A stretch of 64,000 bases of DNA from Penicillus capitatus (taxonomy: Eukaryota; Plantae; Chlorophyta), in NCBI GenBank assembly GCA_965649825.1, contig OZ287697.1, positions 1,079,635 to 1,143,634 of the forward strand, read 5' to 3'. Position numbers and translations under genes: made by a program. How positions within the stretch are numbered: position 1 is the first letter of the stretch; the number at the start of each line of letters is the position of its first letter. The notes beneath the pieces were generated by a model. It ran no database searches and was not told the origin of the DNA. It saw nothing but the letters and a program-made list of their open reading frames with translations. Shown here piece after piece: positions 4,866-43,357 of the stretch.

Positions 4866-4932
4866 CTGCGCACCACGGCAAGGAAGCCGAAAAATGACTG
4901 AAATGACGCGAGGTCGATTAAATGGAGTCCAT

Positions 4933-16883: not shown

Positions 16884-17950
16884 ATGGCAAACGAGACAGA
16901 TCCCTTAGCGGCCACCGTCCACGGCACCAACCCTCAGGTGATGGCGCATAACGCAAGAGGACGGTCTCGACGTGGCGGCTGCAGAATCTGATCGAGCACA
17001 TCGTTCGGGCGAAGATTTATGAGTGTCGTTACTGGAAGGAGGAATGCTTTGGCCTCAGTGCTGAAGTGCTGGTCGACAAGGCGGTGGATTTGAATCATGT
17101 CGGTGGGACATATGGCGGCTCCCAGCAACCATGTCCCTTTCTCTGCCTCATTAACAAGATGCTTCAGATCCAACCAGACAAGGATATCATTATCGAATTC
17201 ATCAAGAACGAGGATTATAAATATGTGCGGCTGCTGGGTGCGGGATTGCGTCGCGTCGGATGTGATGTGACGTTGACGTGACAGGGGCGTTCTATCTGAG
17301 ACTGGTCGGCAGGGCAGTCGAGATCTATCAGTACTTGGAGCCGTTGTACAATGACTACCGCAAAATTCGGGAGCGATTGGCAGATGGGAATTTTGCTTTG
17401 AGTCATGTCGACGAAGTGGTCGATCGGATGTTGCGTACCGATCATCTCTTTGACATCTCTCTACCCCGAATTTCACTCAGGTCACGATCTCACACTTTTT
17501 GAGTGAGACATATCTGACGTGATGATAGAATCCAGTTGGAGCGATCTGGAGCATTGGAGCCACGCACGTCGGCCTTGGCAGGAGATCTGGAGGATGAGGC
17601 AGTAGACGAGGAAGAGGTAGAAGAAGTGGCGAAGGAATTGGCACAGGCAGATGCGTTGAGAGAAGAGAAGGAACGGAACAGAGACAAGGAACGCGTGCGA
17701 TTTCGCCGTCATCGATCTCGGCAATCTCCTCCGCGATCTGCAATGAAAAGACAGGCGCTTTTCTGTTTAGGAGCCCAAAACGACGATCCGAAGATGCGCG
17801 ACCCAAAGAGAAGAGCAAGAAAAAAGTGAGAAGTGTGAGAAAGGGGTGGCTGCGGGAGATAGTGTGCCGTAGGTGGCGACCGAGGAAGATGCCGAGATTG
17901 CCGAGGCAAATGCCTTGCGTGCAAAGCTTGGGTTGAAGCCACTCAAATGA
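16884..17950 (+). CDS. PRP38: Pre-mRNA splicing factor Prp38A
   Basis: MANETDPLAATVHGTNPQ|NLIEHIVRAKIYECRYWKEECFGL...GGTYGGSQQPCPFLCLINKMLQIQPDKDIIIEFIKNEDYKYVRLLG, ending IAEANALRAKLGLKPLK*. Confidence 0.95.
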
Positions 17951-21665: not shown

Positions 21666-22792
21666 CGTTGAGGACTTGTGTAATTGCGAAAGAGAAGAGC
21701 ATTGCTGCGCCCAGAGCAGCGTATCGTCATAGCCTTTACGGCGATAAACATCGACCTCTTCCATTCGAAGGGGCACCAATCCATTCCACAACGTCTTCCA
21801 CACGCTCGGGATCTCGTCCCGTGGACGACGATCGGGGCTGATATCGACGTCCCGTCTATCGAACAATCGACGATTTGCTGCCGGTAAGGCCGAGACCTAG
21901 ATACACATGCGCCTCGTCTGTTTATGTGTGACCATGTGTGACGCAACCGTGATGGTGCGATCGGATGCGAGTGATCCGTCGAGTGGGAAATCTGGAAAGA
22001 AATGCGTCGGCATGCCGTCAGAGTAGATGCTCCCGTCCTTCCATTCGACACCGAGACGCGGACCGAGATAGTAGGGAATATAACAGGAAGCCACCACTGC
22101 GTCGATGAATTCTTTCCGTGAAGCGTATTGCGTCAGGACTTTGCCAGAGATGCCTTTCTTCGGGGTATAGATCGTCACGCCGATGCCGATGCGATCCGTT
22201 GCCCTGCGATGGACGTCATGAGGTAGCATTTCCTAGAAAATAGTCGATAGTGTCAGCCTTTTAGGGTTTTCTCTACCTCTAGTGTTTCGTACAGGATCTT
22301 TGTGACTTTCCATCCGTAGCCAGAATCGAGCAGACGTCCCTGGATCTGACGCGTCAGTTCTGAGCAATCGCGTGGGGAGACGCCAGAAACGGCAAACGCT
22401 CCGGCGAGAGCTCCGGCTGAAGTGCCCGAGATAGGCGTGTCTTTGTGAAAAAGCTTCAGCTCTGTGAGGCACTCCATCACTCCTGAAGTCTAACTCCTTC
22501 ACCCGTTGATGAACGTCTGTGCGCTTTTACCGAGATAGTAAGAGACGAGGAAGCCACCGGGAGAAAAGACAATGCCGAGGTTCGGCGACGGACTCTCAGC
22601 GACCTCTGTGTCATGTGCCGCGACACGAGGTCGTCGATCTACGCGTCTCGCCTTTGATGGCGATAACTCGACGCTGCGCACAAGGCGACAGCGAGTAGCA
22701 CGAATGCTCTTTCGCGTGCCGACGTGCAGACGATTCGACAAAGCCGCGACGTCGGTCATCAGACGCCGCGACGTCAAACTACGGGGCATCAT
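21654..22792 (-). CDS. Patatin-like phospholipase with putative transit peptide
   Basis: GIVFSPGGFLVSYYLG (glycine-rich loop), GTSAGALAG (GxSxG nucleophile), AVVASCYIPYY and YSDG (DG motif). Confidence 0.86.
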
Positions 22793-23078
22793 GAATATGC
22801 CTGTACTCAAAAGAGATGTCCCACAATCGGCCGCGGACCGAGTGAGAACACACAAAGAGCTTTACACGCGTTAAGAGCGGTACTCTAAGGGACAGCTACG
22901 TCCATTTAATACCACGAGCTGTTGGCTGTCTAGACAGCCGCATCATCGCCCTTTCAGGACCATAAAAGACAACCCTCGCAGAGTCCACGATTGATCGATT
23001 CTAAGGCACGAATTCGATCATCAAAAGCGTCGAGAAGAGCATCGCGGGATGATCTAATCGACAACATTCGTGCTGATC

Positions 23079-24055
23079 ATGGAAGCCAACACACAAGCTT
23101 TGACACCGGACAGGTCATTCCTCTTCCTAACCATCTAATTGCTGCAATGCGTTTCCGCAAAGGCACACAGACGCGTCGTTCTTTATCGATTTCGCCGCTC
23201 TCACATTAGCCGATTCGATCGGCGGAGGCGCGTCGTCTATCGTCTATCGAGGTACCTGGCATCGGTAAGACCTCGTGCGGATACCGTCGATTGCATTCGT
23301 GCCTTTGTCGTGGATTTAGGTCTCCGGTCGCGATCAAGAAATGGTTCGATCCGACGTGCGGCACGATGACGCTTCGTGAATTCCATGCCGAGTTGCTAAC
23401 GGTCCGACGGCTACGCCATCCGAATATCGTCCCGTTCTACGCTGCTTCCGCTCAGCCGCCAGATCTCTGTCTGGTGATGGAACATCTCCCGACGTCACTC
23501 TTCGATGTCTTACACAACGCACGACTGCCAATAGACGATCACCGTCTTTGCGCGATGGCACTGGACATCGCCCGAGCACTTCTCTATCTTCACGCTCAGA
23601 CACCGCCCATCATCCATCGCGACGTAAAACCGGCGAATCTCTTACTGGATCGCGCATGGCGCGTGAAGCTCTGTGATTTCGGCCTCGCTTCCGCTCTGCC
23701 TCATCAGCGTCATGCCGGTACCGTGGCATACATGGCACCGGAGTTACTCGATCCTGACAGGACATTCAACGCTGCCGTCGATGTCTACGCCTTTGGCGTT
23801 GTCTTGAACGAGATGCTGTCAGGACGAGTGCCCTTCGAAACGATCGATGACAACGTCATCCGTCGACGCGTGATGCAAGGCGATCGACCGATCATCCCGA
23901 TTTCGTGTCCACTGCCTCTGCGACGTCTCATCGAATCGTGTTGGCAGCACGATGCGCGTAAGCGTCCCATCATGGCGGACGTGCACGATCGACTGCAGCA
24001 TTATCTGATCGCACTGAAGAACGACGCGTCGATGAGAACACCGATGCCGTCATGA
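23079..24055 (+). CDS. Kinase-only tyrosine-kinase-like (Raf/MAP3K-like) Ser/Thr kinase
   Basis: Spliced: FIDFAALTLADSIGGGASSIVYRGTWHRSPVAIKKW, LRHPNIV, IIHRDVKPANLL, KLCDFGLA, GTVAYMAPE, DVYAFGVVLNEM and CWQHDARKRP. Confidence 0.93.
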
Positions 24056-25457: not shown

Positions 25458-26295
25458 GATCACAATTTAATCGATCCTATCGAACTGCCTCGCTACTCTG
25501 CCATACACGCCGAATCGACGATAGACCGTGTTGATGTGACGTCTGTTTCCCAATGGCTCTTTATCTAAACCTTCTGCTTGAGAATGGTGAGGTAATGTGC
25601 GTGGTTCTCTGTTATCGGGTGAACTCTACCGATACAATGAAGTCGAATTCGTCATCGTCGACAAGATCGTCGTCATCGTCTATCTGCCCTATCGGTCGTC
25701 GCATCTTGGCGAAGTGTTATATTACGGCTGTCTTGGCGATCATGGGTTTTTTTCTGCCCCAAAATCGCAATTCCAAGGCAGAGATCGTCGTCGATTTCGA
25801 TGACGTTCCGAAAAGATGGTGCTCGGCTCCGCAATGCAGACCGTAGTTTGTATGAAATTTTCCTCTTCGTCCATCGTAGCCGCCCGCTGCCCAGACCGTG
25901 CCGTCGAGGGCAAAGGTGCCGTGCTGTTCGAGAGATGTTCCGCTTAAGAGACTCAGCACACGCTCATCGTTTTCTTTCGCGTTGTTTTTGTGTTGCGATT
26001 TCTTAACGCGTATGACACCGACGTTGATGTCAAGGGCCTTGCGTGCAGCCAGTGGTCGAGATTCATTTCCGCTTTCATGCGTTGGCTTTCTAACCGACGT
26101 ATCGAGCACGCGTAAAAAATGTATCGTCCGTTCCTTTCCGTCCTGCTTCTTGGCATCCTGCATGCCGCCTGTTCAGAAAACAGCATTCACAGTAGGGACG
26201 TCACCGCGCTAAACGGCCCGTCGACCCGCGCTTCGTTCTTCCTCACCGCCTCAAACCCGTCGTCATAGCTAAAACTCATGACGTTCTTTGTTTAG

Positions 26296-29200
26296 AAGCT
26301 TTCCTCAACCGTCCTGAAGCAAGAGAACACCGACAACAGGAACGACAGCTTCGAGGGGTGAGCACAGAACAGCCTCACTAAACAAGAAAAAAAAAAATAC
26401 TGAAGTGTCTTGCACTTAGGCACCACGGGAAGCACGTGCTTTGTTTCAAGCTTCGAGTACGGAGAGCGAACCGGACGAAGGTGCCCCTCACACATCTGTT
26501 ACCACCAATTCCAGCACTCAGCTGTCTGTTCGTGTGCTGCGTAGTTCAATGTGGAATAGATGAAATTGCTATCGGCTTCTATTTGGATGCCGCATCGCGT
26601 ACATGGCGCATCACCGATACTGTATTGGACGATATCGACAACGATTTGCAGCGACTTGTCGATTGCACCGAAGAAGGCGATACGATTCTTTTCGATGTCA
26701 CCGGCATGATCGTCGCTCTGGCCAAACGTGTGACGATTCGATGGCCGTTGACGATCACAGCCGACATCGAAGATCGAGAACTGGTCGATGGCATCTTTCC
26801 AGAAGCGCCCAGTCGAGCAACGATGGTCTGTCCTTACGAAAACGAAGGCATCTTTCTTGTGAAGTTCGTTGCTATGATGGCTCTGTCTGCGACTGAGACA
26901 GTGGTTGCTCAGGGCCAAAAGCATCATCTTTGCTAATCTCGCATTCGAGCGCTGCATTTTTGAGGACGGCGAAGCGCCAGGCGCGATTATCGAAATCGAC
27001 AAATGCTCATCGCAGCGCTCCACTGATATTGTCCGCTTTCACCACATCGGTTTTAACGGAAATCGTATGATCGATGCCGTGGGTCTCAGGATCGACGCTC
27101 CATCGTGCGCCGAGCTCGAAATGATCGACATTGAGTTTACCAACAACATGTGTTTTGGCGCCTGCGGTGCCGTGCTCGCCGAGAAGAGCACGTTACGGGA
27201 CGTGACAATCGAAGGCAATACCTTCTCCATCAGGGACGGTGCCAAACCTGCTGTGATCTATGGCGGTTACGGTTCCGACACCATCGCCAAACGTGTGACC
27301 GTTAACGATAACGAATGCGCTGCATTCCACATCGAAGAAGGATTCATGACCGTGACCGATTCTACCTTTTCCCGCAACGGAATCATCGGAATAGAGAACG
27401 AGATCGAAATGGGCGGATGTTTTCACTTGGATGACGCTGGATTGACGATCGAAGATTGCGAGTTTCATCAGAACACTGCCGAAAACGGCGGCGTGATCAT
27501 GGGCGTCGAATCCGACGTCATCGCAACCCGATGTACATTCGAAAATAACACAGCCATTATGGGAGGCGTCATGTATTTTGGCGATGATACTTCACTCTCT
27601 ATCCAACGGTGCCAATTCGCATCAAACAGTGCCGGAGAAGATGGCGGTGTTCTTTTCGCCTCAGAGACAGAAGTGGATATTGCCAACAGCACCTTTACGG
27701 ACAACATGGCTGAGAGAAGAGGCGGATGTGTCTTCCTGGAGCGCTTCAGCACGTTTGAACTGTTGGGTGCGTCGCTGCGACGCAATAATGCGCTCGATGG
27801 AGGAGCAGTGGCCGTCACGGATCGATCGACTGGCAACATCATCGATTGCGACTTCATCAAAAACACGGCAGATGAAGGCGGCGGTTCTTGCATTGTGGAT
27901 GAAGCCAGACTCACTCTCCGTTATTCTCGATTCACCGAAGGCACAGCATTGCTTGGAGGATTCGTACATGCCAAGCGTGCCTCAGTCGATCTCGGCAATT
28001 TGACGTTCGTCGGTGGGACAGCGCGTGATGGAGGTGCTATCCATGCCATGTACCAGAGTCGACTGGATGTGGACAATGTGACGTTGGAAGAGAATCAGGC
28101 ACGTCAGGATGGCGGCGCTGTTTACATGGCCGAGAATTGCACAGCGAATGTGACCGAAACGCAGTGCCATGCGAATGTGGCCAAAAGAGATGGCGGATTT
28201 CTTTGCGCCGAGGCATCATCGACACTCAACATGCGCCAGTGTTCTGGTAAAGATCATCGCGCGTCGAAAGGCGGCGGAGTCGTCATCGGAAGAAGCTCCA
28301 GTCGCATTCAGATGGACGATGTCACGTTACGATCGAATGAAGCCGGTGCAGGAGGTGTCGTTCTTCTGCAGTCTGGATCGTCTGGCGTCTTCACAAACTG
28401 CTCCTTCTCAGGCAACGCTGCTGATCAAACCGGTGGCGTCATGCATATCGAAGACGCGAATCTGGAGATGCAAAGGTCGACATTCTCGACAAGCCATGCG
28501 CAACGAGCAGGATTTATTTTTGCGTCGAGCTCGACATTCGATATCGCCGATTGCACTTTGAAGAAGGGATCAGCGGATGATGGTGGATGCGTCTACGTCG
28601 ATCGAGGAGGGTCCTTTACCGGCTATAATGTATCCCTTAGTCGATGCGAAGCCAAGAAGAACGGCGGAGCGATTTACGTTCGTGACGGGCCAGACGTGCT
28701 ACTGCAATTCTGTCGGGTATCGACGACGAAGGCTAACGAGAGCGGCGGTGTCCTTTTTTCACACGGCGCTTCGATCGCCATCGAAGATTCTTCATTTGTC
28801 GATAGTGAAGCCGATCGATTCGGCGGCGGCATTTATGCTACGCAGCAAGGCTCGCTCGAGATGCTCTTTTCTTCCATCGAGAAGACATCGGCGAGCGATG
28901 GAGGCGCCATCGCGATCAGTGCTAATGTCACAGCAAACATCACAGAATCTAGTTTTACCAAGAACGCAGCGACTGACAGAGGCGCGTCGTGGTTCATCGA
29001 ATCATCGATCGCCACGTTTAGCGCGAGTGAATTCGTCGACGGTACCGCACATTTGGGCGGACTCGTCTACATCACCAATCGATCCTCCGTGGACATCCAA
29101 GAAGGCAATTTCGAAAATGGCGAGAGTGAACAGGGCGGATGTCTATCGGCAGAGCTCGAAACGCAGTTGGTGCTAGAAAACGTGGATATGGACGAATGCA

Positions 29201-32200
29201 GAGCGAGAGGAATCGGCGGCGGTATTGTCTTAAGGCAGATGTCGAAAGCAGATATGACAGATGTCCGCATCCGATCGACCAGCGCGAATGCCAGTGGAGG
29301 GGCCCTTTTCTGTTCGAATTCCGAACTCAGCGCCAAGCGATTTGAGATCGAAGACAGCTCTGCCGGTGTTCGAGGCGGCGCCCTATATGCTGCCTCTTCT
29401 AGCGTCGTCTCTCTGAAAAAATCCACAGTACACCATACCTCTGCGATGATCGGTGGAGCAGCAATGCTTGAAGCCAATGTGTCTGCCGTATTCGAAAATG
29501 TGACGTTTACGGAATCGATCGCTGATCGTACTGGTGGCGTGAGCTACGTCGATCGATCGAGTTTAGCAATCGTCGACAGTCTAATCGAAGACAGCAGAGC
29601 GCAGGACGGCGGCTGCGTTTATTCGCGGCAGTCCTCTCTGAACATCGACGACTCGATCATGCGCAACTGCACGGCGATCGAATCTGGTGGATGTGTCGTG
29701 GCTGAAAGCGGTAGCTCTGTCGTTATGAGCGATGCAAGTCTGACAGAAAGCTCGGCGAGATACGGTGGGGCCATCATGCTTCAGAATTCGACGCTAAATG
29801 CACAGCGCCTGCACGTTACGAAGAGTCGAGCACGTTATGATGGCGGAGCGATCTTTGCTGGAAATGCATCGACGGTGCTCTGCGCCGCATGCCATCTAGA
29901 AAACAATGCAGCTAAGGGTAAAGGTGGGGCCATCTCTTTCGACTCTGCCACGTCACAAATTCTCGCTCTGCAATTCGACAAGAGCACCATTCAAGGAAAC
30001 ACTGCCGATCAAGGAGGTCAGTATGAATCAATTCTTCTGTACCCTCTGGCATAGGGTTACGAATTGTGTAGGTGGTCTCTACTTCACCAGCAGCAATCGC
30101 AGCGCAGAATGTGCGAATCCAGGAGCGCAATGTTCCGTTGCCGTTCTATCGGAGACGACCTTTGTCGACAACGAAGCGTCTTCCATCGGCGGCGCTCTTT
30201 TCTCTAATGAACTGACTGCCATTCGAGTCGCCTGCTCATCACAGGATAAGCGTCCCAGATCCGAATTCTACGCGAGAGAGGAGTGGGAGTCCATGGGCAG
30301 TTTAAAATCGAATGCCGATCTATGCAAGGAGTGGAAAGGAAATCGAGCCAAAACTTATGGACCGGCAGCCGCTTCCTACATTCGCACTGTCAAGAAAACG
30401 ATTCACTACGATCACGATAACACAAGCGTCGTTGTTGAAGGAAACACGCATGTCATCGCCAATCAGCGCAGTGGATCGCACTTACCCACAATTCTGCTTC
30501 AAGCTACTGATGAACTCGAACAGGGCCCCGCCATCGGCGCCAGCAATGAGACGATTGAAGCGATCATGTCGTCACCGGACAATTTTTTCGTGGGATCGAT
30601 CCGCGTGTCTCTCGCCTTTGGCGAAGCCGTCATCTCCGGCATTGCTGAATTTGCGCCGCCAGGGACTTACCAAATCCTGATCGCCTTTAACGATGAGAGC
30701 ATGGAGGCCTTAGCTCTTGAGGTTCACATTCGAGAGTGCCTCATCAACGAAGCATGGACGGTGGAAGGACCAACCTGTCGAGAATGTTCGGCCGCAACGT
30801 ACAATTTTTTGCCCGATGACGAAATGGGCTGTCGTCCGTGTCCCGATAAGGCAATCTGTGAGAGCCGTGTGATCCAACCAAAGAAAGGATACTGGCATCA
30901 GACTCCGTGTTCCGAACACATCCAACGATGTACCAAATTCAAAGCCTGCGATTTTGCAGACCGCGAGAATCTGCTGATGGAGATCGGTGACGCCACAGAG
31001 ACGTGCGATTTCGAAGAAGACCAGTTGACGGAATACACACACGCACAATGTCGCAAAGTACGTGCAACTAATCTCACACTTTTTCTCACAATCGTCGTTG
31101 CCATGCATAGGGCCACTCAGGTCCGCTATGTGGCTCCTGTGAAGCTGGATACGGTCGATCGCAATCATCCCTCTGCAAAAACTGTTTCATCAAGTTTGGC
31201 AATGTGATGCTGGTTTTGCTCTCGAGTCTGATTCTGCTGTCCCTCTGCTGTTTGTTCGTTCGGAGCAACGTGGTGTCGTTTTTATCCACGATTCGAAGAG
31301 AACAGGTGCCGACGTCGCCATCCGAAGGCCCGTCAACCAGTAGCAACTTATCACCAGCGGATATGAACGCGGTGAAAGTATGGTCCTCAGAAAGGATAGT
31401 AAACAGCGGAAAGACGCCTCAGCAGGTTTCGGATAGACGCCAGATGACCGTCAATTCTCCGGAACTGGCCAAATGGAAAACGGCAGAAATGTTTAAAGTA
31501 TAAGCATCGCTCACTCTTACGACGGCAAAGAGTGATGTATGGTGCGATAGATCATCATCAACTATCTCCAGATGATCGCTCTTGCAGTGAGTGTGAATGT
31601 GGATTGGTCTGTCACGTTGGTCGCTCTCTACGAAGCAGCAGGCAAGCATCGGATCCCTCTGAGTGCGTTCGTTCGTACATTGCTTATCGTCTAGGTTTCG
31701 TGAGTGGCATGACGACGGAGACAACGCATCGATCTGTCGAATGCTTGGCGTCTGATGAGGCATCCGTCATCGGCGTCGTGATCGATCTCGTTCTACCTCT
31801 CATTGTCATTGTTCTATTCGTGATCTTTTGGACACTAGCCATGGTTAGGTACAAGGAAAACGTGATCTATCTACTGAGAAAGATCATCCTTAGTGCCACG
31901 GCTGTTTTCTACATTTCCTACCTATCTCTCACAAAAACAATAATAAACATCCTTATCTGTGTCGAAGTTCACGATTCTGTCGATTTCATAAATGATTCCA
32001 CTGCATATTACTGGGCAATGGATACCAGTGTTACATGCTACAAGGGATCGCATGTCGTTCTTGCTAGTGCCTTGGGCTGGCCTCTCTTTGCCCTGTTCAC
32101 TATAGGCTTTCCCATGACACTCGCTGGCGTTGTTCTGTGTTGCGTTCAGGACGATTACCAAAAAGGAAGGGTGTATGACACGACAGGTATCATGTATCGC

Positions 32201-33379: not shown

Positions 33380-35238
33380 ATCGATTCTTCTTTGAATTCT
33401 AAATCGCTTTCACGCGATCGAGTGTTTACGAATAAGAGGAGCTTTAACATTAATGTGATGACATAATAGGAAGGGACCTCAGCCGAGGTCTGAGTAAACT
33501 AGAAACCTGCTGTTCAAACACACTAAACGGACAACAGAGGTCCGTAAACTTGGCATTCATGTGAGAATTCTGGTTCAGGGAAACCGGTGTGTAAATCTCT
33601 AGAAGCGGTATGTAAGCAAGGCGACTTCCTTGTTGTATCTTCTGATCGCACACGTGACCTCGTCTTCGTCCGAGACCACACATGATGGAGTCTCGAGAAA
33701 GAATCCAAAGGACTTCTCCCAGCCCAGCCATTTCATCCCGTCGAAGGAGTTTCTGTAGAGGTAGGATCCCTCTCCGACAGCAAAACAGTGTATCTTGCCA
33801 ACACCGGTGGTCACACATTCCGGTGCCGAATGAAAGACACCTCCCAGATCGACCCAGTCGCGCCATTTACCATCGTAGGTCCTCTGCATAACGCTGTTCT
33901 CTTTAACACCCAAGCTGAAAATGTCCATCCTGTTCGAACTCCATGACGTCGCTGATGGACGCCCATTCACTAGACCTCTGTGAACATCATAGCCGCTCGG
34001 CCAATCTCCTGAGACAAGTTTGTATTTTTCATAGAGTCCCAAGTCCATTACGGTAGCGAAGCAGGCGAAGTGGTCCTTGTTGAGCGATGTACATCCAAAG
34101 GGACCAAAAAAAATCCCTCTCAAGTTCGTGCGACTTCCCCATTTTCCATTGACTGCTCCAATGTGATGGCCTCCGTTGACGTCTCCTCTGAACATACAGT
34201 CGACGGCGGAGGGCGATCGGGCGATACAGGAAGGAACTTCCATCAATCTCCCTCCTTTGGACTGCCAGCCGCTCCATTTTCCGCCAGAAAACGTCTTGAT
34301 ATAGAGTGCAACGTTGGTGCCCAGCACCAGGACGTCGATGATGCCGACGTCGCGACTGACACATTCGATCTCGTCGACGATGGTACCGCCGAGATCCTCC
34401 CATTCGCTGTAGACACCCTTGTCAATGGAAATGTGCATGACGTTCGATTTCGGTGTTCGGATGAAGCAGTCCACACGGCCTGGTCCCCATGACGTGCAGC
34501 ATGGGCGACTTTGTGCCGTGTTCCCCGAGATCCGGAAGCGTTCTTGTGGTTTCTTGTTCACAGCTTCATTTCCGTCGATGTTGACATTGGCGTAAGAAGA
34601 TGTCGCGAGAGCGCCCTTTTTTGCCGTCATTTCCACGCCGTCGCATTTGGAAGCTCCTGAGCAGTCGTTTCTTGTAGAGCCAGTAGCAAAATTCAGTTGG
34701 ACGAGCGCCAACAAGAACAGCTGAACGCTAAACGGAGACATACCCGCTTCGGCGAATCTTTTTAATAATTAGATATCGGCAAGATGCGGCCCAATGACAA
34801 CAGACAAACGCAGATGCTGCAAGAAAGAATGGCGGAATATAGTACGGTCGCGAATACCACGTGGCGAGGAGTGTACGAATCTGGTTGTTTTCGGGAGGCG
34901 AGGCCAATCGAGTTCCTTGCCGACGCGAGTGGGCGACGGTGACGCAACGCATCGCCTTGCAGCATTCTTCTAACAAGGAGACTTCTGCCGCTGGATCATC
35001 CACTGGTGATTTGCTACGGACCAGTCAGTCCTTCAGTTCATGTTCAGCCCACAGAATCTGCTTCAGTAGAGGCTCCCCAGCTGCTCTGATTGTTCCTGGA
35101 TTCGGTATTGTTGTGTGTCTCGACGAATCAACATGATCGCGGCTGGTTGTTTTTTGCAGTCGTAGTACGCTTTTCTCGCTCACTGGACTTGATCCATGCG
35201 ACGACGATGATCATCGTTCGAAATCGATCGATCGATCG
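33380..35238. repeat. Duplicated lectin unit 1 (3' flank + CDS + 5' flank)
   Basis: 33380-35238 aligns with ~35675-37516. 34487-34827 is identical to 36772-37112. 33466-33583 is nearly identical to 41633-41750. Confidence 0.93.
33599..34741 (-). CDS. Secreted 7-bladed beta-propeller lectin, PLL/PHL (DUF346-repeat) type, copy 1, intronless
   Basis: Signal peptide MSPFSVQLFLLALVQLNFATG, then seven ~46-aa repeats of the form P-x-C-x-S-W-x-x-x-R-x-D-[CIV]-F...W-x-x-W-x-x-L-G-G, the PLL-type blade consensus. Confidence 0.8.
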   Translation of the reverse strand: MSPFSVQLFLLALVQLNFATGSTRNDCSGASKCDGVEMTAKKGALATSSYANVNIDGNEAVNKKPQERFRISGNTAQSRPCCTSWGPGRVDCFIRTPKSNVMHISIDKGVYSEWEDLGGTIVDEIECVSRDVGIIDVLVLGTNVALYIKTFSGGKWSGWQSKGGRLMEVPSCIARSPSAVDCMFRGDVNGGHHIGAVNGKWGSRTNLRGIFFGPFGCTSLNKDHFACFATVMDLGLYEKYKLVSGDWPSGYDVHRGLVNGRPSATSWSSNRMDIFSLGVKENSVMQRTYDGKWRDWVDLGGVFHSAPECVTTGVGKIHCFAVGEGSYLYRNSFDGMKWLGWEKSFGFFLETPSCVVSDEDEVTCAIRRYNKEVALLTYRF

Positions 35239-35883
35239 CAAACGAAAACAAAAATCTCTGTTTATGCTAAGCTGCGAAGACTCTACAAATCATTGACAAT
35301 CTGTCCTGCGACGTCATCATGGACGGTGCAGATCTCATCGCCACCATACGGAAGGCAAACACCGACTACTTTCTAGGCACTTGGATTTGCGACAATAGTT
35401 CAAGGGAGAGAAACCGCGTCTGCTTCATACGCAATCGCGATACTCTCGCCTTTTGCCTCGAGCACGGTGTTGACGCATCTGCTCTTAGCTTAGTGAAAAG
35501 ACGGGATGTCTCTGATGTGCGCCCTGATAGCTTCTGTTTTCTAGGTGCCTCTACGATGCTGTCTTGTTTTCCCATATCTATTCATTCACGATACAGTCAG
35601 TTCTCTTTACGACAGAAAAAAAGGTCACCAATCTTTTCTTCCACATTGATGGCACAACATTGCCGCCTTCATGGATTTTCATTTAAATCGCTTTCCACGC
35701 GAACGAGCGTTTAAGAATAAGGCGAGCTTTAACATTAATGTGATGACAGAATAGGAAGTGACCCCAGCAGATGTCTGACTAAACTAGAAACTTGTTGTTC
35801 AAACACACTAAACAGACAATAGTGCTCCGTAAACTTGGCATTCGTGTAAGAACTCTGGTTCTGGGAAACGGTTGTGTAAATCT

Positions 35884-37026
35884 CTAGAAGCGGTATGTAA
35901 GCAAGGCGACTTCCTTGTTGAATCTTCTGATCGCACACGTCACTTCGTCTTCATTGGAGACCACACATGATGGAGTCTCGAGAAAGAATCCAAAGGACTT
36001 CTCCCAGTCCGACCATTTCGCACCGTCGAAGGAGTTTCTGTAGAGGTAAGATCCCTCTCCGACAGCAAAACAGTGTATCTTGCCAACACCGGTGGTCACA
36101 CATTCCGGTGCCGAATCAAAGACACCTCCCAGATCAACCCCGTCGTGCCATTTACCATCGTAGGTCATCTGCAAAACGCTGTTCGGTCGAACACCCAAGC
36201 TGAAAATGTCCATCCTGTTCGAACCCCATGACGTCGCTGATGGACGCCCTTTCACTAGACCTCCGCGACCATAAAAGCCGCCCCATCCTGTTCCCGGGGT
36301 CCAGTATTTTTGTGAAAGGATCAAGTCCATTGAGGCAGCGAAGCAGGCGAAGTGGCCCTCGTTGAGCGACGTACATCCAAAGGGGCTAAAAAGAATCCCT
36401 CCTAAGCCCGTGGGTTTTCCCCATTCTCCATCGACAGCTTTAATGTGATAGCCTTTGCTAGCCGGTCCTCTCATAATGCAGTGGACGTTGGAGGGCGTTC
36501 GGACGACACAGGAAGGCACCTCCATCAGCTGCCCTCCTTTAGACTCCCAGTCGCTCCATTTTCCATCAGAGAATGTCTTGACCCAAAGTGCAGTGTCAGT
36601 GCCCAGCACCAGGACGTCGATGATGCCGACATCACGACTGACGCATTCGATCTCGTCGATGATGGTACCGCCGAGATCCTCCCATTCGCTGTAGACACCG
36701 TTGTCAATGGAAATGTGCATGACGTTCGAATTCGGTCCTGTTCGGACGAAGCAGTCCACACGACCAGGTCTCCATGACGTGCAGCATGGGCGACTTTGTG
36801 CCGTGTTCCCCGAGATCCGGAAGCGTTCTTGTGGTTTCTTGTTCACAGCTTCATTTCCGTCGATGTTGACATTGGCGTAAGAAGATGTCGCGAGAGCGCC
36901 CTTTTTTGCCGTCATTTCCACGCCGTCGCATTTGGAAGCTCCTGAGCAGTCGTTTCTTGTAGAGCCAGTAGCAAAATTCAGTTGGACGAGCGCCAACAAG
37001 AACAGCTGAACGCTAAACGGAGACAT
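35884..37026 (-). CDS. Secreted PLL-type beta-propeller lectin, copy 2, intronless
   Basis: 380 aa. The first 85 aa are identical to copy 1, with the same seven-blade pattern. Confidence 0.8.
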   Translation of the reverse strand: MSPFSVQLFLLALVQLNFATGSTRNDCSGASKCDGVEMTAKKGALATSSYANVNIDGNEAVNKKPQERFRISGNTAQSRPCCTSWRPGRVDCFVRTGPNSNVMHISIDNGVYSEWEDLGGTIIDEIECVSRDVGIIDVLVLGTDTALWVKTFSDGKWSDWESKGGQLMEVPSCVVRTPSNVHCIMRGPASKGYHIKAVDGEWGKPTGLGGILFSPFGCTSLNEGHFACFAASMDLILSQKYWTPGTGWGGFYGRGGLVKGRPSATSWGSNRMDIFSLGVRPNSVLQMTYDGKWHDGVDLGGVFDSAPECVTTGVGKIHCFAVGEGSYLYRNSFDGAKWSDWEKSFGFFLETPSCVVSNEDEVTCAIRRFNKEVALLTYRF

Positions 37027-38334
37027 ACCCGCTTCGGCGAATCTTTTTAATAATTAGATATCGGCAAGATGCGGCCCAATGACAACAGACAAACGCAGAT
37101 GCTGCAAGAAAGGATGACGGAATACAGTACAGTCACGTATACCACGTGGCGAGGAGTGTACGAATCTGGTTGTTTTCGGGAGGCGATGCCAATCGAGTTC
37201 CTTGCCGACGCAAGTGCGCGACGGTGACGCAACGCATCGCCTTGCAGCATTCTTCTAACAAGGAGACTTCTGCGGCTGGATCGCCCACTGGTGTTTTGCT
37301 ACGGAGCAGTCAGTCCTTCAGTCCATGTTCAGCCCACAGAATCTGCTTCAGGAGAGGCTCCCCAGCTGCTCTGATTGTTCCTGGATTCGGTATTGTTGTG
37401 TGTCTCGACGAATCAACATGATGACGGCTGGTTGTTTTTCGCAGTCGTAGTACGCTTTTCTCGCTCACTGGACTTGAGCCATGCGATGACGATGATCATC
37501 ATCCTCCGAAATCGATGGATCGAATGATCGACGTCTTCGACGGTCCCATCACGTAGCGATTGGATCGCCGACATTGCGACTGACTCGGAAAGGTAATAAT
37601 GCCTTTTCTGTTCAAGTTGAATGACGCTCGATTTGAGTCGAACAAAGATCTGCGACGAAAGATGCGTATGTGACACTGTCATGAAAAACATCACATGGTT
37701 TACGGCATTTATGATTTTTAGGTTCACAGGAAACGTATTCTCGCATGGCTCGATTTCCTTTTCGCGCTTACGACAACTACGATTGGGATACGGTGGCAAG
37801 GAGTAGAAGAATGAAATGTGACGCTGATCGCAACGTTTGACTGATTTACGGTACTGTCCAGTCGCTGGAGTGCTTGTGTCTAGTTTCCGCATTCTAAACA
37901 ATGGACATCGTTCGAATCTGTTCTTCGTTTAGAAGATCATCACGATCGCCTAACTATGCCGGTCAAAAGGAAAATGTAAAGAACAGAGATCTGTAAGATG
38001 ATTGCCACAAGAACTCCGAGTTTTATTCGGGCGACGCGTGGCTGTAGTCACTGACTTCTGATCTTACGTTGGTACCACGGAGCAATGCACACCAATCCAA
38101 ATCGCGAGACTTGCCTTACACATTCATCATTCCTTTCATAACCTGTTAGACGACGCCGATGAAGTATAAAGAATATTCCAGTTTAATCTCGTCTTCGAAG
38201 ACTATTGAACACACTAGACACAGACATCTTATGTTTTTTCTTTTAATGGTTTTACAACTCCTTTATGAAAAGATCAGGAGTGCGTCTGTGTTCAGTACAA
38301 GATCAGCTCGTAACAGGCACAGAAGCCAACATGT

Positions 38335-39057
38335 CTAAAGCCAAATGAAATGAAATGTGTACGATTGAAGGTCGGGTGACTCCAAGGAGTGCAATGGTCT
38401 TCTGTTCTGCGTTCCGCGGGGTTCAGGTAGGGTCCCGATGGGCCGCGTAGGGCTGTTGAAAATGCGAATCGGGAGGATCATGTAGTCTAGGTTAGCGTAC
38501 GATGTCGCTTTTCCGGCGAAGATCTTCTCGTGCAGGTTCCTCGAGATGAACACTCTAAGGTTGCAGATGGGAAGCCATTCTGGCAGCGGATTGCCCGAGG
38601 GATCCCTCTTTCTGCGGTTCAGGAGGTGCGGTGCAGTCATGTATGTGTTCAGGAGTCCCCGTGGGGGACATTTCCTATCGAGTCGCGTTTTGAATGGCGA
38701 TGCTGTCGAGGGCGTCTTCTGCAGCGATGCCTTCATCGACGTTCCCAATGACGACGGGATTTTGCCTGTTGAAATCGATTGGTACGGGTAGCTGACTTCA
38801 AATTTTCCGAGATCGTCGAGTTCAATGTTCCACGTGTCTTCGTCGTCCTTCAGATGTTGGTCCAGGATCTTCCCAAAAGTCTTGAATTTATCTTCGCGAA
38901 TCTGAATGTAGTATCGGCCTCCACGATCAGAACGAATGTCTTCCACAAGTTCCTTCAGGTTCGATAACTGTAAAGTTCTTTCTAGACTGATGCCGAGTTG
39001 ACGGAACGGCGGCCGTTGTCCCTTCAGATATCCGGTTTGAACTGAAAACTGCAGTCG
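38335..39057 (-). CDS. Orphan ORF B: open in the same frame immediately after the TGA of ORF A, with no in-frame ATG until deep in the ORF
   Basis: Stop-free from 39057 to the stop at 38335 (RLQFSVQTGYLKGQRPPFRQLGISLERTLQLSNLKELVEDIRSDRGGRYYIQ...). No family recognised. Confidence 0.45.
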   Translation of the reverse strand, partial: RLQFSVQTGYLKGQRPPFRQLGISLERTLQLSNLKELVEDIRSDRGGRYYIQIREDKFKTFGKILDQHLKDDEDTWNIELDDLGKFEVSYPYQSISTGKIPSSLGTSMKASLQKTPSTASPFKTRLDRKCPPRGLLNTYMTAPHLLNRRKRDPSGNPLPEWLPICNLRVFISRNLHEKIFAGKATSYANLDYMILPIRIFNSPTRPIGTLPEPRGTQNRRPLHSLESPDLQSYTFHFIWL

Positions 39058-39960
39058 TCACAGCGAATCTGGGCCTTGATCTCCTGCGTCTGTTTGCGGA
39101 TCTCGCGGGCCTGAGAGATGCGCTGCTTCTGGGCGGGTCTTTGCTATTGTGAGCGTCTCCTGGGGCATGCTATGGCGGACAGCAACGCGATATGATCTGG
39201 GCGGGGAGATGTGCGCGAGGTTGGCTTCAACGGATGGGGGAGGCGGCGGAATCGAGAGTGTGGACGGGACCAGGGTACAGTGAAAACTGAGGCAGGTTTG
39301 CATCTCTGCCAGGAGGAGACTGGCTTCCTTGAACATGTCAATGCATGCAGCATGGTCGGCCGGCAAAGCCTTCTGGAAGTGCTCCAAGGTGCTTCGTACT
39401 TTTTCAAAATCTTGGGCGAATGCAGTCAGAAAATCCGAGGGAGTGAATGTTTCCTGGAAGCGGGCTATCTGTGAGAGACAGGAGGTCTGGGCGTGTCGTT
39501 CATAGTAAGGGCCTTCGGGGGTCAGCAGAAGCGAGTCTCTGGAACGTTCGTGGAGGCTGACGAGGCAGAGCTGCTCGGCATCCCGCCGTTCGTGGGCTGT
39601 CAAGTAGGCGCGGATCTTCGAGATGCGCTGCACTGGGTCCAGAGTAGCGGCTGCTTGTGTGGGACACGCTCTGACAGCAGCGTTCACGAGAATGAGCTCG
39701 TCCTTGCCCATTGCGTCGAGAACCTCGGGGGACCGGCGTAGATCGCGCCGGTATCTGACCGTGTAAGCGGCCTGGGCAACCGCCGTGCGCACTGGGTCAG
39801 GGGCGGTGCCAGGACCTCCGGACTGCGAACCGAAAGGCTGCATCGTGCGTATCGCTCGTGTTCGGACACCAACGGTCGGCAAGAAATTTTGGCGGGCGGA
39901 ACGGAAGTGTCGTACGAGAAAAAGGTCGGGACATCTCATGTTGATTTCCTCGAATCTCAA
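39058..39960 (-). CDS. Orphan ORF A (300 aa), no recognisable domain
   Basis: Long uninterrupted ORF with a helical central part and a Pro-rich C-terminal part, ending CTG TGA at 39058-39060. Confidence 0.55.
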   Translation of the reverse strand: MRFEEINMRCPDLFLVRHFRSARQNFLPTVGVRTRAIRTMQPFGSQSGGPGTAPDPVRTAVAQAAYTVRYRRDLRRSPEVLDAMGKDELILVNAAVRACPTQAAATLDPVQRISKIRAYLTAHERRDAEQLCLVSLHERSRDSLLLTPEGPYYERHAQTSCLSQIARFQETFTPSDFLTAFAQDFEKVRSTLEHFQKALPADHAACIDMFKEASLLLAEMQTCLSFHCTLVPSTLSIPPPPPSVEANLAHISPPRSYRVAVRHSMPQETLTIAKTRPEAAHLSGPRDPQTDAGDQGPDSL

Positions 39961-40420
39961 CCAGCAAATTCCCAGTTACCGACATCATAACGTAAGCCTG
40001 ACCTTGTTGATCTTGCGCGACACAAGTGGTTCTTCTGTTTTTACGATTGCGATCGATCGATGAATCAATCGTCACAAACGACGAAAGGATAAATTCCTCC
40101 CGTGTATCAGATCGTGCTTCTCTCATATCTTCTCTAATCGACCACCGTTCTGTTAGGACCGGAGGCATCGTCGCATAGTCTGAACGCATCGGGACCTGTA
40201 AGACGAAAGGAGCCAGACGGGTATTGTTACAGCATCTGCACAGGTATCATAGAAACAGATCACTTCAATCTTTCTTGACGTTCTGTGATCTAACAGTACC
40301 GCGTCAATGGATAGTCAGTCGAGTTCGCGTTGTACGATAATTGATTAGAGACGAAATGACAGAAGTACGATCCGATGATCGAGATGGACTGCTGCTGTTT
40401 TCCGTGACACCTGAAACACA

Positions 40421-40442
40421 GATCGATCGATCGATCGATCGC
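40421..40442. repeat. (GATC)n microsatellite, the longest of many GATC/CGATCG runs
   Basis: GATCGATCGATCGATCGATCGC. Similar runs occur at 7031-7054, 12861-12912, 20148-20174 and 35223-35238. Confidence 0.9.
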
Positions 40443-40537
40443 GAACGTAAAGCAGAAACCTCTGTATCCGCTAAGCTGCGAAGACTCTACAAAACACTGA
40501 CGATCGTCCTGCGACGTCATTATGGACGGTGTTGATC

Positions 40538-40758
40538 TGTCAGCGGAAGGCTTCACGTTCTTACAGAGCAAGGGTATCTACAAGGCCACGTCTACGGATT
40601 TATACGCTAATAGTGACAGGACAGGTGAGTCAGCAGCCTCTCAGAGCCATAGGAAAAGGACTCTGAGGTGACGTTAACCCCGAATGAGCTCCCCTTCAGA
40701 GACAGAACCCTTAGAAACCGAGGCAGTCACGATGTGACTTGCTACAGTCATTCTGACA
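40538..40758. mobile_element. Solo-LTR-like insertion, 221 bp
   Basis: Begins TGTCAG and ends CTGACA (TG...CA, 6-bp inverted ends), flanked by a 5-bp direct repeat TGATC (40533-40537 and 40759-40763). The homologous empty site is at ~35325-35340. TATAAAT lies on the minus strand at 40598-40604. Confidence 0.8.
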
Positions 40759-41783
40759 TGATCTCATGGCCGCCATACCGAAGGAAAATCACCAAGAACT
40801 ATCTAGGCACTTGGTTCAGCGACGATAGTTCAGGATATAGAAACGGCATCTCGGAGACACGCCGATCGATCGCGATATTCTCGCCTTTTACTTTGAGTAC
40901 GGTAATGAGTCATCTGCTCGTAGCTGGTGAAAAGTCGTCACGTTTCTGATCTGTCCCCCACGGATCCTGTTTTCTAGGTGCCTCTACGACACTGCCTTGT
41001 TTTCCTGAATCTATTCCTTCGCACTACATTCAATCCTCTTGATTGGGAAAACGAGCTCACCGATCTGTCCTCTGGCAGTGATGGTAGAGTGTTGCCTTTA
41101 TGGCTATTCATTCTAATCGCCTTCCATGTGTATCTCTATATCTTCCAAAGGCGTTCCATAGCACCATGTCTAAAGCACGGAATAGCGAGGAGCTAGTTCG
41201 AACGGAGAGACACAGTTTCTTTGTGCTGGCGGCTGTTGATCACACTCGCAAGAAAGCACGTGTAAGAGAAATGTTGAAAGCGAACACGCCTTTCTCCCCC
41301 TCACAGTCTAGCGCGCATTAGGCCTTATTCATCTCGACCAGATCAATGGCTGTTGTTCCGCCTGGATGTATACATACCTTCGTTGTCAATAAGCATGTTG
41401 CCTCTCGCAGCACATCACACATAGGGTATGCAGCTTCGCCGTGACAGATTTGTTTGCCATTCGGTCAGCCAATGGAAGCAGAGCGCATTTGCGACTGTGA
41501 ACAGAAGATCGGGATCAGACCGATTCCTTTGCTCGGCGAAAAGAGGATCTGCATGAGTCCGACGGCGTCAACGCAACAAGGCGAACGTGTGTCTAAGGAA
41601 AAAAGGAACATTAACATCAACGTACTGACACAATAGGAAGGGACCTCAGCCGAGGTCTGACTAAACTGGAAACCTGCTGTTCAAACACACTAAACGGACA
41701 ACAGAGGTCCGTAAACTTGACATTCATGTGAGAATTCTGGTTCAGGGAAAATTGGCTGTTCAGGGAAACAAGTATGTAGATTT

Positions 41784-43051
41784 CTAGAAGCGGTGTGTAA
41801 TAAAGACGACTTCCTTGTTGAAACTTCTGATCGCACACGTGATCTCGTCTTTGTTCGAGACCACGCATGACGGAGTCTCGAGAAAGAAGCCGAAGGACTT
41901 CTCCCAGCCTGACCATTTCTCACCGTCGAAGAAGTTTCTGTATAGGTAGGATCCATTTCCGACAGCAAAACAGTGGATCTTGCCAACACTGGTGGTCACA
42001 CATTCCGGTGGCGAATCGAAGACACCTCCCAGATCGACCCACTTTTCCCATCCTTTAGCACCGTGTGTCAGCAGCACGACGCTGTTATTCTTGGCGTTTA
42101 AGGCAAAAATGTCCATCCTGTTGTTCGATTTCCATGACGTCACAGATGGACGCCCTTTCACTTGACCTCCGTGATCACTATATCCGGGCAGCCATTCAGC
42201 TGAGATTTGGAATTTTTCAACAAGGGTCAAGTCGATTGAGGCAGCGAAGCTGGCGAAGTGGTCCTTGTTGAGCGATGTACATCCAAAGGGGCCAAAAAGA
42301 GTCAATCCCAAGTTCGTGTATTCTGTCCATTCTCCATCGACAGCTGCAATGTAATGGCCTTCGTTGAGTTTATTTCTGACCATACAGCCGACGGTGGAGT
42401 GCGTTCGGACGGCACAGGAAGGCACCTCCATCAGCTCACCTCCTTTAGACTGCCAGCCGCTCCATTTTCCGCCAGAGAAAGTATTGATGAAGAGTGCAAT
42501 GTTGGTGCCCAGCACCAGGACGTCGATGAAGCCGACATCACGACTGACGCATTCGATCTCGTCGATGATGGTACCGCCGAGATCCTCCCATTTGCTGTAG
42601 ACACCGTTGTCAATGGAAATGTGCATGACGTTCGATTTCGGTGCTCGGATGAAGCAGTCCACACGGCCTTCTTCCCATGACGTGCAGCATGGGCGGCTCT
42701 GCGGCTCTGCGCCGATGATCTTGAACGCTTCAGTGACGCTTTTATCCACATCGCCGTTGGCGTCCTTTAACACACAACGCGTCAGAAGAAAACTTTTGGA
42801 ACAGCGCGACGCACCTTTGTCTTCGCGACGGCGTACGGCAGAAGGATGTCGTTGCGGCGTGTTTGTGCAGTTGCAACGTCAACGTTGTGCGGAACTGCAT
42901 CCCGCGGAGCAGACAGGCGATCGGCTTCCGCTCCGTCAAGATCTGACTGCGCCGCCATCTTGGAAGTCGGGATCCAGTACCCGAAAACGCCGTTGCAGGC
43001 GCACAAAAGCGTCCCTGCGATGATCAGCGCCGAAAGGCTTGTCGTCTGCAT
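41784..43051 (-). CDS. Secreted PLL-type beta-propeller lectin, copy 3 (different signal peptide/pro-region, one 50-nt intron)
   Basis: MQTTSLSALIIAGTLLCACNG...AKTK|intron ~42768-42817|DANGDVDKSVTEAFKIIGAEPQSRPCCTSW..., followed by the seven blades. Confidence 0.8.
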
Positions 43052-43357
43052 CTTGGCGAGCTTCTAGAAGAAAACACGGCCTGCCTTAAAACTGCGTTTT
43101 GCGAAATGATTGTCGTCGGAGGCGCAAAAGGTCGATGTTCGATAGGTTCTCTCAGCAGACGCTTACTCCGAGGACGGTTCGCCCAGAGCGGGGACCGTGT
43201 TGATACGAACAAACGCGGTAGCAAAACCGCTTCTTTCTTGCAGAATATGATGTTCGTTTTCAGACCCCCTTTTATATTGCTGCATGGATGGCGTCATGCC
43301 TTTGTCATGATCGCGTCGTGCTTCGTTCCTTTTTTGCCCTACATCTTCGTGACAGTG

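Follow-up and report, generated by a model that had tools for sequence, protein, structure and literature searches.

Among described systems, the closest to the genes reported here are the PLL lectins of Photorhabdus, whose sugar pockets sit between adjacent blades of a propeller. The hydrophobic H site, a fucose pocket, combines a polar residue in the T2 turn with two Trp residues, one in strand 3 and the other the second of the W-motif, whereas the polar P site draws its Arg/Glu from strand 2 and its Trp/Gln from strand 3 (PMC12203525, PMC5584973). This dual-site (H and P) arrangement is said to be unique to PLLs, which bind the fucosylated or O-methylated glycans that microbes and invertebrates typically carry, and which themselves include inactive sites with mutated residues (PMC12203525). 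Homologues of the PLL/DUF346 type have previously been noted only in bacteria and, bioinformatically, in fungi. Here we describe three paralogous lectin genes (c1, c2, and c3) of the green alga Penicillus capitatus, which lie on the minus strand at 33.4 to 43.1 kb of a 64,000-nt window (positions 1,079,635 to 1,143,634 of contig OZ287697.1, assembly GCA_965649825.1; coordinates below are those of the window). The explanation that we favor as a whole, and that we hold to be probable without regarding it as secure, is a tandem lectin cluster driven by sequence exchange, wherein blades 3 and 4 form a hypervariable cassette of predicted pockets.

Several other recognition systems resemble this locus in part. 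The fungal HNWD/NLR WD40 propellers encoded by het-d, het-e, and het-r of Podospora also combine propeller recognition domains with sequence exchange, a hypervariable binding surface, and polymorphic alleles, and positive selection at four positions per repeat has been demonstrated in them. However, the fungal exchange takes place between near-identical repeats of intracellular NLR-like proteins, whereas the algal blades diverged long ago, sequence passes between paralogues, and the products are predicted secreted lectins. Plant NLR/R-gene clusters and the vertebrate major histocompatibility complex (MHC) share with the algal locus copy-number variation, interlocus conversion, hyperdivergent or trans-specific alleles, and raised synonymous (dS) as well as nonsynonymous (dN) divergence around recognition residues; in these systems omega (dN/dS) exceeds 1 at ligand-contact residues, and the ligands are known. 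Tectonin and tachylectin lectins (Limulus, Laccaria Tectonin 2) are multivalent propeller lectins of innate defense that, like PLLs, bind the same kinds of microbial and invertebrate glycans (fucosylated or O-methylated), but they belong to a different propeller family with six or five blades and other motifs. Ligands of this kind make a defense logic plausible. The Biomphalaria FREPs and sea-urchin Sp185/333 proteins are clustered multigene families of secreted recognition proteins, and their mosaics of "elements" have been ascribed to recombination or gene conversion (PMC12074976, PMC1988830). Those invertebrate families have other folds and an established immune function, and somatic diversification is claimed for them, whereas the variation seen at the algal locus is of the germline or population kind. 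Tectonins are mentioned in PMC10481521. In the literature available to our search, there was no report of algal PLL lectins or hypervariable algal lectin clusters.

Gene models and predicted fold

The c1 protein consists of a hydrophobic N-terminal signal-like peptide, a roughly 60-residue disordered linker, and a seven-bladed PLL-type propeller, and the c2 protein is 82% identical to it. The gene models are:

33599–34741, minus strand: lectin copy 1 (c1), a single-exon open reading frame (ORF) of 380 amino acids
35884–37026, minus strand: lectin copy 2 (c2), a single-exon ORF of 380 amino acids, tandem partner of c1
43051–42815, minus strand: c3 exon 1, signal-like peptide and linker
42814–42765, minus strand: putative c3 intron, 50 nt, GTGCGT...CTGAC...AAAG
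42764–41784, minus strand: c3 exon 2, linker and propeller

For c3, a 329-amino-acid ORF beginning with GTG (41784–42773) was replaced by the two-exon model, whose spliced product of 405 amino acids has an intact frame. The signal-like peptide is encoded by a separate ORF (43051–42782) that joins the lectin ORF once the 50-nt intron is removed. The intron signals (GT/AG ends and a CTGAC/CTAC branch-like motif) are kept in two relatives, namely a second haplotype of this locus and a related alga (ERZ26696514), at lengths of 51 and 50 nt. A frameshifted pseudogene was rejected in favor of a conserved 50-nt intron. Because the exon frames differ in the related alga, an intron is likelier than a frameshift. 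Exon 1 of c3 has no relation to the N-terminus of c1 or c2; homology between c3 and c1 begins about 12 codons before the RPCC motif, near c1 residue 67.

A phmmer search with c1 against PDB sequences returned the Photorhabdus lectins PLL2 (E = 3.1e-27), PHL (4.9e-19), and PLL (2.3e-14), and the precomputed Pfam annotation of all close database relatives is PF26607 (Beta-prop_PLL). An AlphaFold2 model, built from an alignment of 26 family members, has a mean predicted local distance difference test score of 84.5, with most of the propeller above 90 and the disordered residues 1 to 62 below 50. Its 26 strands of at least three residues, together with additional short strands, are consistent with seven blades. 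The best 22 Foldseek matches of this model are all PLL-family structures (E 2e-17 to 5e-15, template modeling (TM) score 0.76–0.81), led by PLL2, PHL, and PLL5 at a TM score of 0.79. Each protein has seven repeats (r1 to r7) of about 45 residues and 13 to 14 Cys residues, with Cys in strand 1 and strand 2 of most repeats. These matches and the model indicate that c1 to c3 encode probably secreted members of the PLL lectin family, rich in cysteine and folded as seven-bladed propellers. The wider family comprises 5382 representative proteins at E ≤ 1e-3, and the close relatives form about 10 clusters, all from ENA or Logan assemblies. At the protein level, c1 to c3 appear to add a new branch, a eukaryotic one, to an already known family of lectins.

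The resemblance to the Photorhabdus lectins extends from fold and sequence homology (E = 3e-27; TM 0.79) to a WxxW motif in repeats some 47 residues long, clustered paralogues (P. laumondii has five tandem homologues), and the natural degeneration of certain pockets. Unlike the bacterial genes, the algal genes are eukaryotic and nuclear, one of them with a putative intron. Their products carry N-terminal signal-like peptides, long disordered linkers, and paired cysteines in most blades; the P-site Arg/Glu/Trp/Gln are not conserved in them, and they appear to retain the aromatic-plus-Trp pair of the H site in blades 2 and 6 only. To our knowledge, neither hypervariability nor polymorphism in copy number has been reported for the bacterial PLL family.

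Haplotypes, shared tracts, and segment trees

The stretch from 25884 to 47026 (21,143 bp) is 100% identical to ctg326229_27x, a 24.8-kb contig of ENA assembly ERZ25074695, and the same assembly contains a second, syntenic haplotype on the 1.46-Mb contig ctg340516_41x. From 3069 to 24139 the two differ at 36 of 21,071 positions (99.83% identity) with no gaps, and thus belong to one species, as haplotypes or as strains. Close to the cluster, identity amounts to about 97 to 100% per 400 bp. The single-nucleotide polymorphisms outside the lectin block are clustered (4567–5570, 16904–19208, and 22663–23856, with, for example, 10 in 5197–5570), and one stretch of 11 kb between the haplotypes has none. 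Such clustering, together with the clean stretch, suggests a patchy history of recombination or gene conversion in the population.

The second haplotype contains only two lectin genes, wherein B1 occupies the position of c3, and A1 stands where the window has c2 and c1. In what follows, A1 is the positional allele of c1 and B1 that of c3, while A2 and B2 are genes of the related species. The repeat units, shared tracts, and divergent segments of the cluster are:

33400–35235, minus strand: tandem repeat unit 1, which comprises c1, its 5′ flank (about 490 bp), and its 3′ untranslated region (UTR; about 200 bp), from self-blastn
35684–37523, minus strand: tandem repeat unit 2 (c2), from self-blastn
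35223–35697, minus strand: c2/c1 spacer (475 bp), a diverged copy (73–87%) of DNA downstream of c3
34487–34827, minus strand: 341-bp identical tract, c1 side, from sequence comparison
36772–37112, minus strand: 341-bp identical tract, c2 side, from sequence comparison
33466–33583, minus strand: c1 3′ UTR patch, with its c3 partner at 41633–41750 (minus strand) and c2 counterpart at 35751–35868
33959–34269, minus strand: hypervariable center of c1 (from the end of blade 2 through blade 4), from alignment
36244–36551, minus strand: hypervariable center of c2, from alignment
42150–42457, minus strand: hypervariable center of c3, from alignment, including 42253–42297
41881–43076, minus strand: island of allelic divergence over the c3 gene body, 70–81% identical to the second haplotype, with flanks at 96–99%

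Units 1 and 2 are 90.3% identical over 1844 columns by self-blastn and recur with a period of 2285 bp. The source counterparts of the spacer lie downstream of c3 at 40426–40538 and 40760–41126. Between 40282 and 41080, in this same DNA downstream of c3 that is copied at the c2/c1 junction, indels between the haplotypes span about 236 alignment columns. The only tandem repeat detected in the cluster is a (GATC)5 microsatellite at 40421–40441.

Allelic divergence is 19 to 30% over c3/B1 and 16% over the c1/A1 center, as opposed to 0.17% in the background. c1 and A1 are 84% identical over a 400-column block (34363–33965) whose flanks are 98 to 100% identical, and within the block single 60-column windows span 48 to 97% identity. 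In such windows the blade 3–4 region of A1 is 48 to 88% identical to c1, and r5 to r7 are 98 to 100% identical. At 30 of the 84 c1/A1 differences both states are present in paralogues, and it is these sites alone that point to exchange. One patch of A1 matches c3 (KWTEY) and another matches c2 (YWTxGTGW), though c2 is missing from the haplotype of A1. We considered A1 as a crossover product with the 5′ part of c2 and the 3′ part of c1, or as an assembly collapse, and rejected both; its 5′ flank resembles that of c1 more closely than that of c2, and 32 of its states occur in none of the other copies, so that A1 did not arise by collapsing c1 and c2 into one.

An earlier note on this DNA described c1 as a patchwork of c2 and c3 with hypervariable central blades, shaped by segmental gene conversion and diversifying selection, and likened the cluster to a locus of innate-immune diversification. 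The individual matches that it listed were all recovered. c1 and c2 share a maximal identical run of 341/341 positions, which comprises 86 bp of 5′ flank and codons 1 to 85. Such a run has a probability of about 6e-6 at the 5.6% divergence of the adjacent noncoding flank, and of about 1e-12 at the unit-wide 9.7%; divergence around the tract is 5.6% upstream and 7 to 13% downstream. A1 differs from both genes at 2 sites within it. We read the tract as a recent gene-conversion patch between c1 and c2. In the 3′ UTR patch, c1 and c3 have 3 differences, compared with 15 for c1 and c2 and 16 for c2 and c3. Three peptide patches likewise set c1 and c3 apart from c2: DCFIRTPKSN in c1 and DCFIRAPKSN in c3 versus DCFVRTGPNSN in c2; FSGGKWSGWQSKGG in c1 and c3 versus FSDGKWSDWESKGG in c2; and FGPFGCTSLNKDHF in c1 and c3 versus FSPFGCTSLNEGHF in c2. 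The last blades do side with c2, given that 48 discriminating sites in r5 to r7 unite c1 with c2 and 13 unite c1 with c3 (binomial p = 8e-6), and blades 3 and 4 differ among all three copies at a nucleotide p-distance of 0.25 to 0.27.

Recombination tests, which the note had proposed, gave significant results. The order of c1=c2 and c1=c3 sites along the triplet is strongly clustered (runs test p = 5e-5), and the site pattern is heterogeneous among segments (chi-square p = 3e-4). Neighboring-site incompatibility is below that of permuted alignments in a test similar to the pairwise homoplasy index (PHI-like; p = 2e-4), 49% of the informative site pairs among the five conspecific genes fail the four-gamete test, and Sawyer-type runs are significant for c1 and c3 (p = 6e-4) and for c3 and A1 (p = 3e-3). 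Within the first half of blade 4 of c3 (42253–42297), 56/62 positions match c1 (34065–34109) and 32/62 match the positional allele B1; we read this segment as a probable conversion recipient that acquired an A-type patch. Exchange tracts among the paralogues are about 20 to 350 bp long, and segments of one gene have different nearest relatives. Segmental gene conversion between paralogues is upheld by the 341-bp patch, the PHI-like test, and a bootstrapped conflict among segment trees (92–100%). The description of c1 as a patchwork is nonetheless too simple. Exchange is real, but c1 is the conservative copy of the A lineage. The patches in r1 and r2 that c1 shares with c3 are seen as described, but they are common to A1 and B1 too and so reflect divergence of c2, the outlier, rather than conversion into c1. 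The similarity between A-type and B-type 3′ UTRs is also present in both haplotypes, and c2 is again the outlier.

Neighbor-joining trees were bootstrapped by segment for c1, c2, c3, A1, and B1 together with A2 and B2 of the related alga. In the segment from the preblade region through r1, {B1,B2,c3} is supported at 97% and {A1,c1,c2} at 93%, a grouping which implies that A-type and B-type genes predate the split from the related alga. Blade 1 groups {B1,c3} at 92%, and r2 groups {A2,B2} at 90%. In r3 and r4 the group is {A2,B1,B2} (92% and 100%), wherein c3 falls among the A-types, and in r5 to r7 {A1,c1,c2} returns at 93 to 99%. The blade-4 type of B1 (GCSAR...FNCFVSG...NLYQRYW) is common to the genes of the related species, and exon 1 of c3 is 74% identical to that of B2 from the other species and only 67% identical to that of its conspecific allele B1. 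The blade-4 sequence types appear to be older than the split from the related species, and differential retention of paralogues is the alternative to lineages older than speciation. In the related alga (ERZ26696514), lectin genes are also clustered, and 192-kb and 4.08-Mb contigs of one sample carry lectin sets that are at least 90% identical (P0004/P0294, P0009/P0295, and P0013/P0298/P0299), which are either alternative haplotypes or a segmental duplication.

We are fairly confident of the evolutionary mechanism, tandem duplication or unequal crossing-over with repeated short-tract exchange. The cluster evolves by duplication or unequal crossing-over, as the three genes of the window and the two of the co-occurring haplotype show, and repeated short-tract exchange between paralogues mixes their segments. 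Blades 3 and 4 form a hypervariable cassette, wherein positional alleles differ by 16 to 50% at synonymous and nonsynonymous sites in a background of about 99.8% identity (about 99% nearer the genes). The constant pockets would be kept while the two neighboring pockets of blades 3 and 4 are remodeled or lost. Old cassette variants shuffled among paralogues and alleles would then give different glycan-recognition surfaces in the population. Balancing or diversifying selection would maintain this variety, and its source would be partners that themselves vary (microbes, grazers, viruses, symbionts, or mates, for example).

Selection, predicted pockets, and rival explanations

Divergence was estimated by blade with the method of Nei and Gojobori, from few sequences and with recombination confounding the estimates. 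For c1 and c2, dS from the preblade segment through blade 7 is 0, 0.08, 0.36, 0.36, 0.35, 0.05, 0.09, and 0.20. For c1 and A1 it is 0.23 to 0.35 in r3 and r4 versus 0 to 0.08 in five of the six other segments, with blade 7 at 0.20 from four clustered synonymous differences; for c3 and B1 it reaches 0.9 to 1.1 in r3 and r4. Since dS is as patchy as dN, the hypervariability does not arise just from amino-acid selection on new mutations. The blade 3–4 segments instead go back further in time, whether because old alleles were retained there or because diverged donors supplied the sequence. Omega in r3 and r4 is 0.85 to 2.1 for within-species pairs versus 0.1 to 0.6 elsewhere, and none of the tests for omega above 1 by blade or pocket class is significant.

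The 1.46-Mb contig carries a second cluster of PLL lectins at a distance of about 190 kb (L006 3383–4858 and 8001–9203; L007 1274–2635). An alternative contig of low coverage (10x) departs from the main one there mostly in r2 to r4. The ratio of nonsynonymous to synonymous polymorphism (pN/pS) is 0.89 in these repeats and 0.16 in the remainder of the gene, while pS is similar. The differences between other close pairs of the family also fall mostly in r2 to r4, which indicates that fast evolution of this face is a family property.

The PLL pocket positions were transferred to the algal repeats by homology at about 22% identity. In this register the H site reads T, then Y/W/F, then W in blade 2, and S, Y, W in blade 6. 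Blades 1 and 5 keep only the W-motif Trp, the strand-3 Trp being replaced by H or M, and blades 3, 4, and 7 of c1 and c2 are without the canonical aromatic/Trp pair. H-site-homologous positions are thus kept in r2 and r6, partly kept in r1 and r5, and replaced or variable in r3 and r4, two blades in which no other positions vary more. The P-site residues are not conserved in the same homology register (R/I/A/H/R/K/E and D/D/D/A/D/H/T, with I/T/G/Y/T/S/T at the Trp position). As to the diversifying selection proposed in the earlier note, variable columns are modestly enriched at the PLL-site homologues, but dN/dS is never significantly above 1. Columns with at least three states among the five conspecific genes are enriched at H-site homologues in the conserved blades (odds ratio 8.1, p = 7e-4 versus all other columns; odds ratio 4.8, p = 0.025 versus other loops only), in a register that was partly chosen after the variation had been seen. 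Omega at H-site-homologous codons is 0.4 to 4.1 by pair, with few sequences and no significant comparison. We accordingly regard an adaptive, binding-site interpretation of the blade 3–4 variation as tentative, somewhat short of an even chance.

Several further points count against the explanation that we favor. A Pfam-A scan of the three lectins gave no match even at E ≤ 1, where the scanned copy probably lacked PF26607; the family assignment therefore rests on phmmer against the PDB, the precomputed Pfam annotation, and Foldseek. The allelic comparison is between two haplotypes of one sample, as assembled sequence, and at 52 of the 84 c1/A1 differences one allele has a state of its own, for which no donor was sampled. 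Blades 3 and 4 of c1 and c2 carry H+R and Y+P in place of the aromatic/Trp pair, and these pockets may simply be dead. In blade 5 of c2 (approximately 36100–36130), Gly replaces the second W-motif Trp (WHDG versus WRDW), and in blade 4 of c3 (approximately 42240–42250), Ser replaces the strand-2 Cys (HFASF versus HFACF), so that one Cys is left without a partner; a pocket or disulfide could be weakened in either case. Finally, because dN/dS in blades 3 and 4 is about 1 and never significantly higher, relaxed constraint fits the amino-acid data there as well as positive selection does.

Relaxed constraint is also the core of the rival explanation that survives best, which we judge unlikely although it deserves serious weight. 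Under neutral birth-and-death, degenerate blade 3–4 pockets would drift, and duplication and conversion would shuffle neutral variation. An omega near 1 in r3 and r4, the ratio of 0.89 in the second cluster, the missing Trp pair in r3 and r4, and the mutated, inactive sites of the PLL lectins themselves (PMC12203525) all agree with it. However, neutral drift cannot yield 16 to 50% divergence (dS 0.2–1.1) between haplotypes whose noncoding flanks are 99 to 100% identical; divergence of this size implies old lineages that were retained or imported. An omega near 1 that averages over invariant structural residues would moreover mean that some sites exceed 1, and the r2–r4 bias recurs across paralogues and species.

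Recognition of self, non-self, or mates (gamete agglutination, allorecognition, or symbiotic partner choice) rather than defense is an improbable reading. Two haplotypes at comparable coverage (27x and 41x) occur in one sample, the extreme allelic divergence is confined to secreted recognition proteins, and blade-4 types are common to different species, all of which would suit such a role. The surrounding block, by contrast, is collinear and only about 1% divergent, unlike known algal mating-type regions, and no mating-type genes are among the Pfam-scanned ORFs. The second cluster with the same bias also fits a family-wide property better than a single specialized locus.

An assembly artefact, wherein a strain mixture in the metagenome was stitched into a false tandem or an identical tract was collapsed in the assembly graph, is very improbable. 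The source is indeed a mixed-strain metagenome assembly with at least two or three haplotypes. However, the 475-bp c2/c1 junction is a diverged copy (73–87%) of DNA downstream of c3 with no clean haplotype switch, which indicates an old, real duplication rather than a mis-join. The flanks of c2 are about 94% identical to those of c1, far under the allelic 99 to 99.8%, A1 has its 32 unique states, and a 2.3-kb unit at 90% identity should be easy for long reads, to which the contig names, reminiscent of a HiFi assembler, presumably point.

Programmed diversification of blades 3 and 4 by silent donor cassettes, retroelement-type mutagenesis, or deaminase-type hypermutation is hardly credible, since although the cassette is bounded by conserved anchors (MEVPSC ... 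GRPSxTSW) and many variants have no sampled donor, the unbiased substitution spectrum (transition:transversion ratio about 1, no A- or C-specific excess) fits old divergence and not targeted hypermutation, tblastn (word size 2, E ≤ 1) found no silent blade 3–4 donor cassettes in the window and three related loci, and Pfam found no reverse transcriptase among the neighboring ORFs scanned.

Neighboring genes and implications

Genes neighboring the cluster include those for GH81, kinesin, a PALP enzyme, and protein kinases:

13069–14139 and 14637–15596, minus strand: ORFs for a green-type RuBisCO activase and for the C-terminal domain of a GH81 endo-beta-1,3-glucanase

The best named matches of the RuBisCO activase are from Raphidocelis and Chlorella (82–83%), and this gene marks the host as a chlorophyte. 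The cluster adjoins a 1049-amino-acid ORF (26905–30054, plus strand) with weak matches to Chlamydia polymorphic-membrane-protein repeats (PF02415, E = 1.5e-9), whose product may be a beta-helix surface or adhesin-like protein. This ORF lies within the region of raised haplotype divergence, with identity dips to 96 to 97% inside it (29565–29964) and just upstream (25965–26364). Pfam returned nothing relevant, and no transposase or reverse transcriptase, for the ORFs between c3 and c2 and elsewhere, and an Rfam scan of the window gave no match.

The locus looks like a recognition locus, since copy-number polymorphism combined with hyperdivergent alleles in a near-identical background is the signature of such loci (the MHC, R-gene clusters, and fungal het/NLR propellers). 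The most far-reaching form of this reading is a speculative proposal that we consider unlikely to hold in full. In it, a green alga holds an MHC- or R-gene-like balanced polymorphism at clustered secreted PLL-type lectins, with old cassettes that partly predate speciation, are kept by frequency-dependent selection exerted by microbes, viruses, or symbiotic partners, and are re-assorted by gene conversion and unequal crossing-over; this would amount to a population-level glycan-recognition repertoire. Were blades 3 and 4 merely unconstrained, the locus would still be a clean case of short-tract gene conversion in an algal tandem family, of modest interest.

Very little is known about how microalgae recognize microbes, viruses, or partners. 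If our explanation is true, this locus would be a concrete and testable candidate, wherein secreted multivalent lectins combine constant and variable pockets with copy-number polymorphism, and allelic divergence is about 100 times that of the genome around it. The predicted proteins would extend the PLL fold from entomopathogenic bacteria to eukaryotic algae in a disulfide-stabilized form, and their natural cassette variants may serve for the study of specificity change in propeller pockets.

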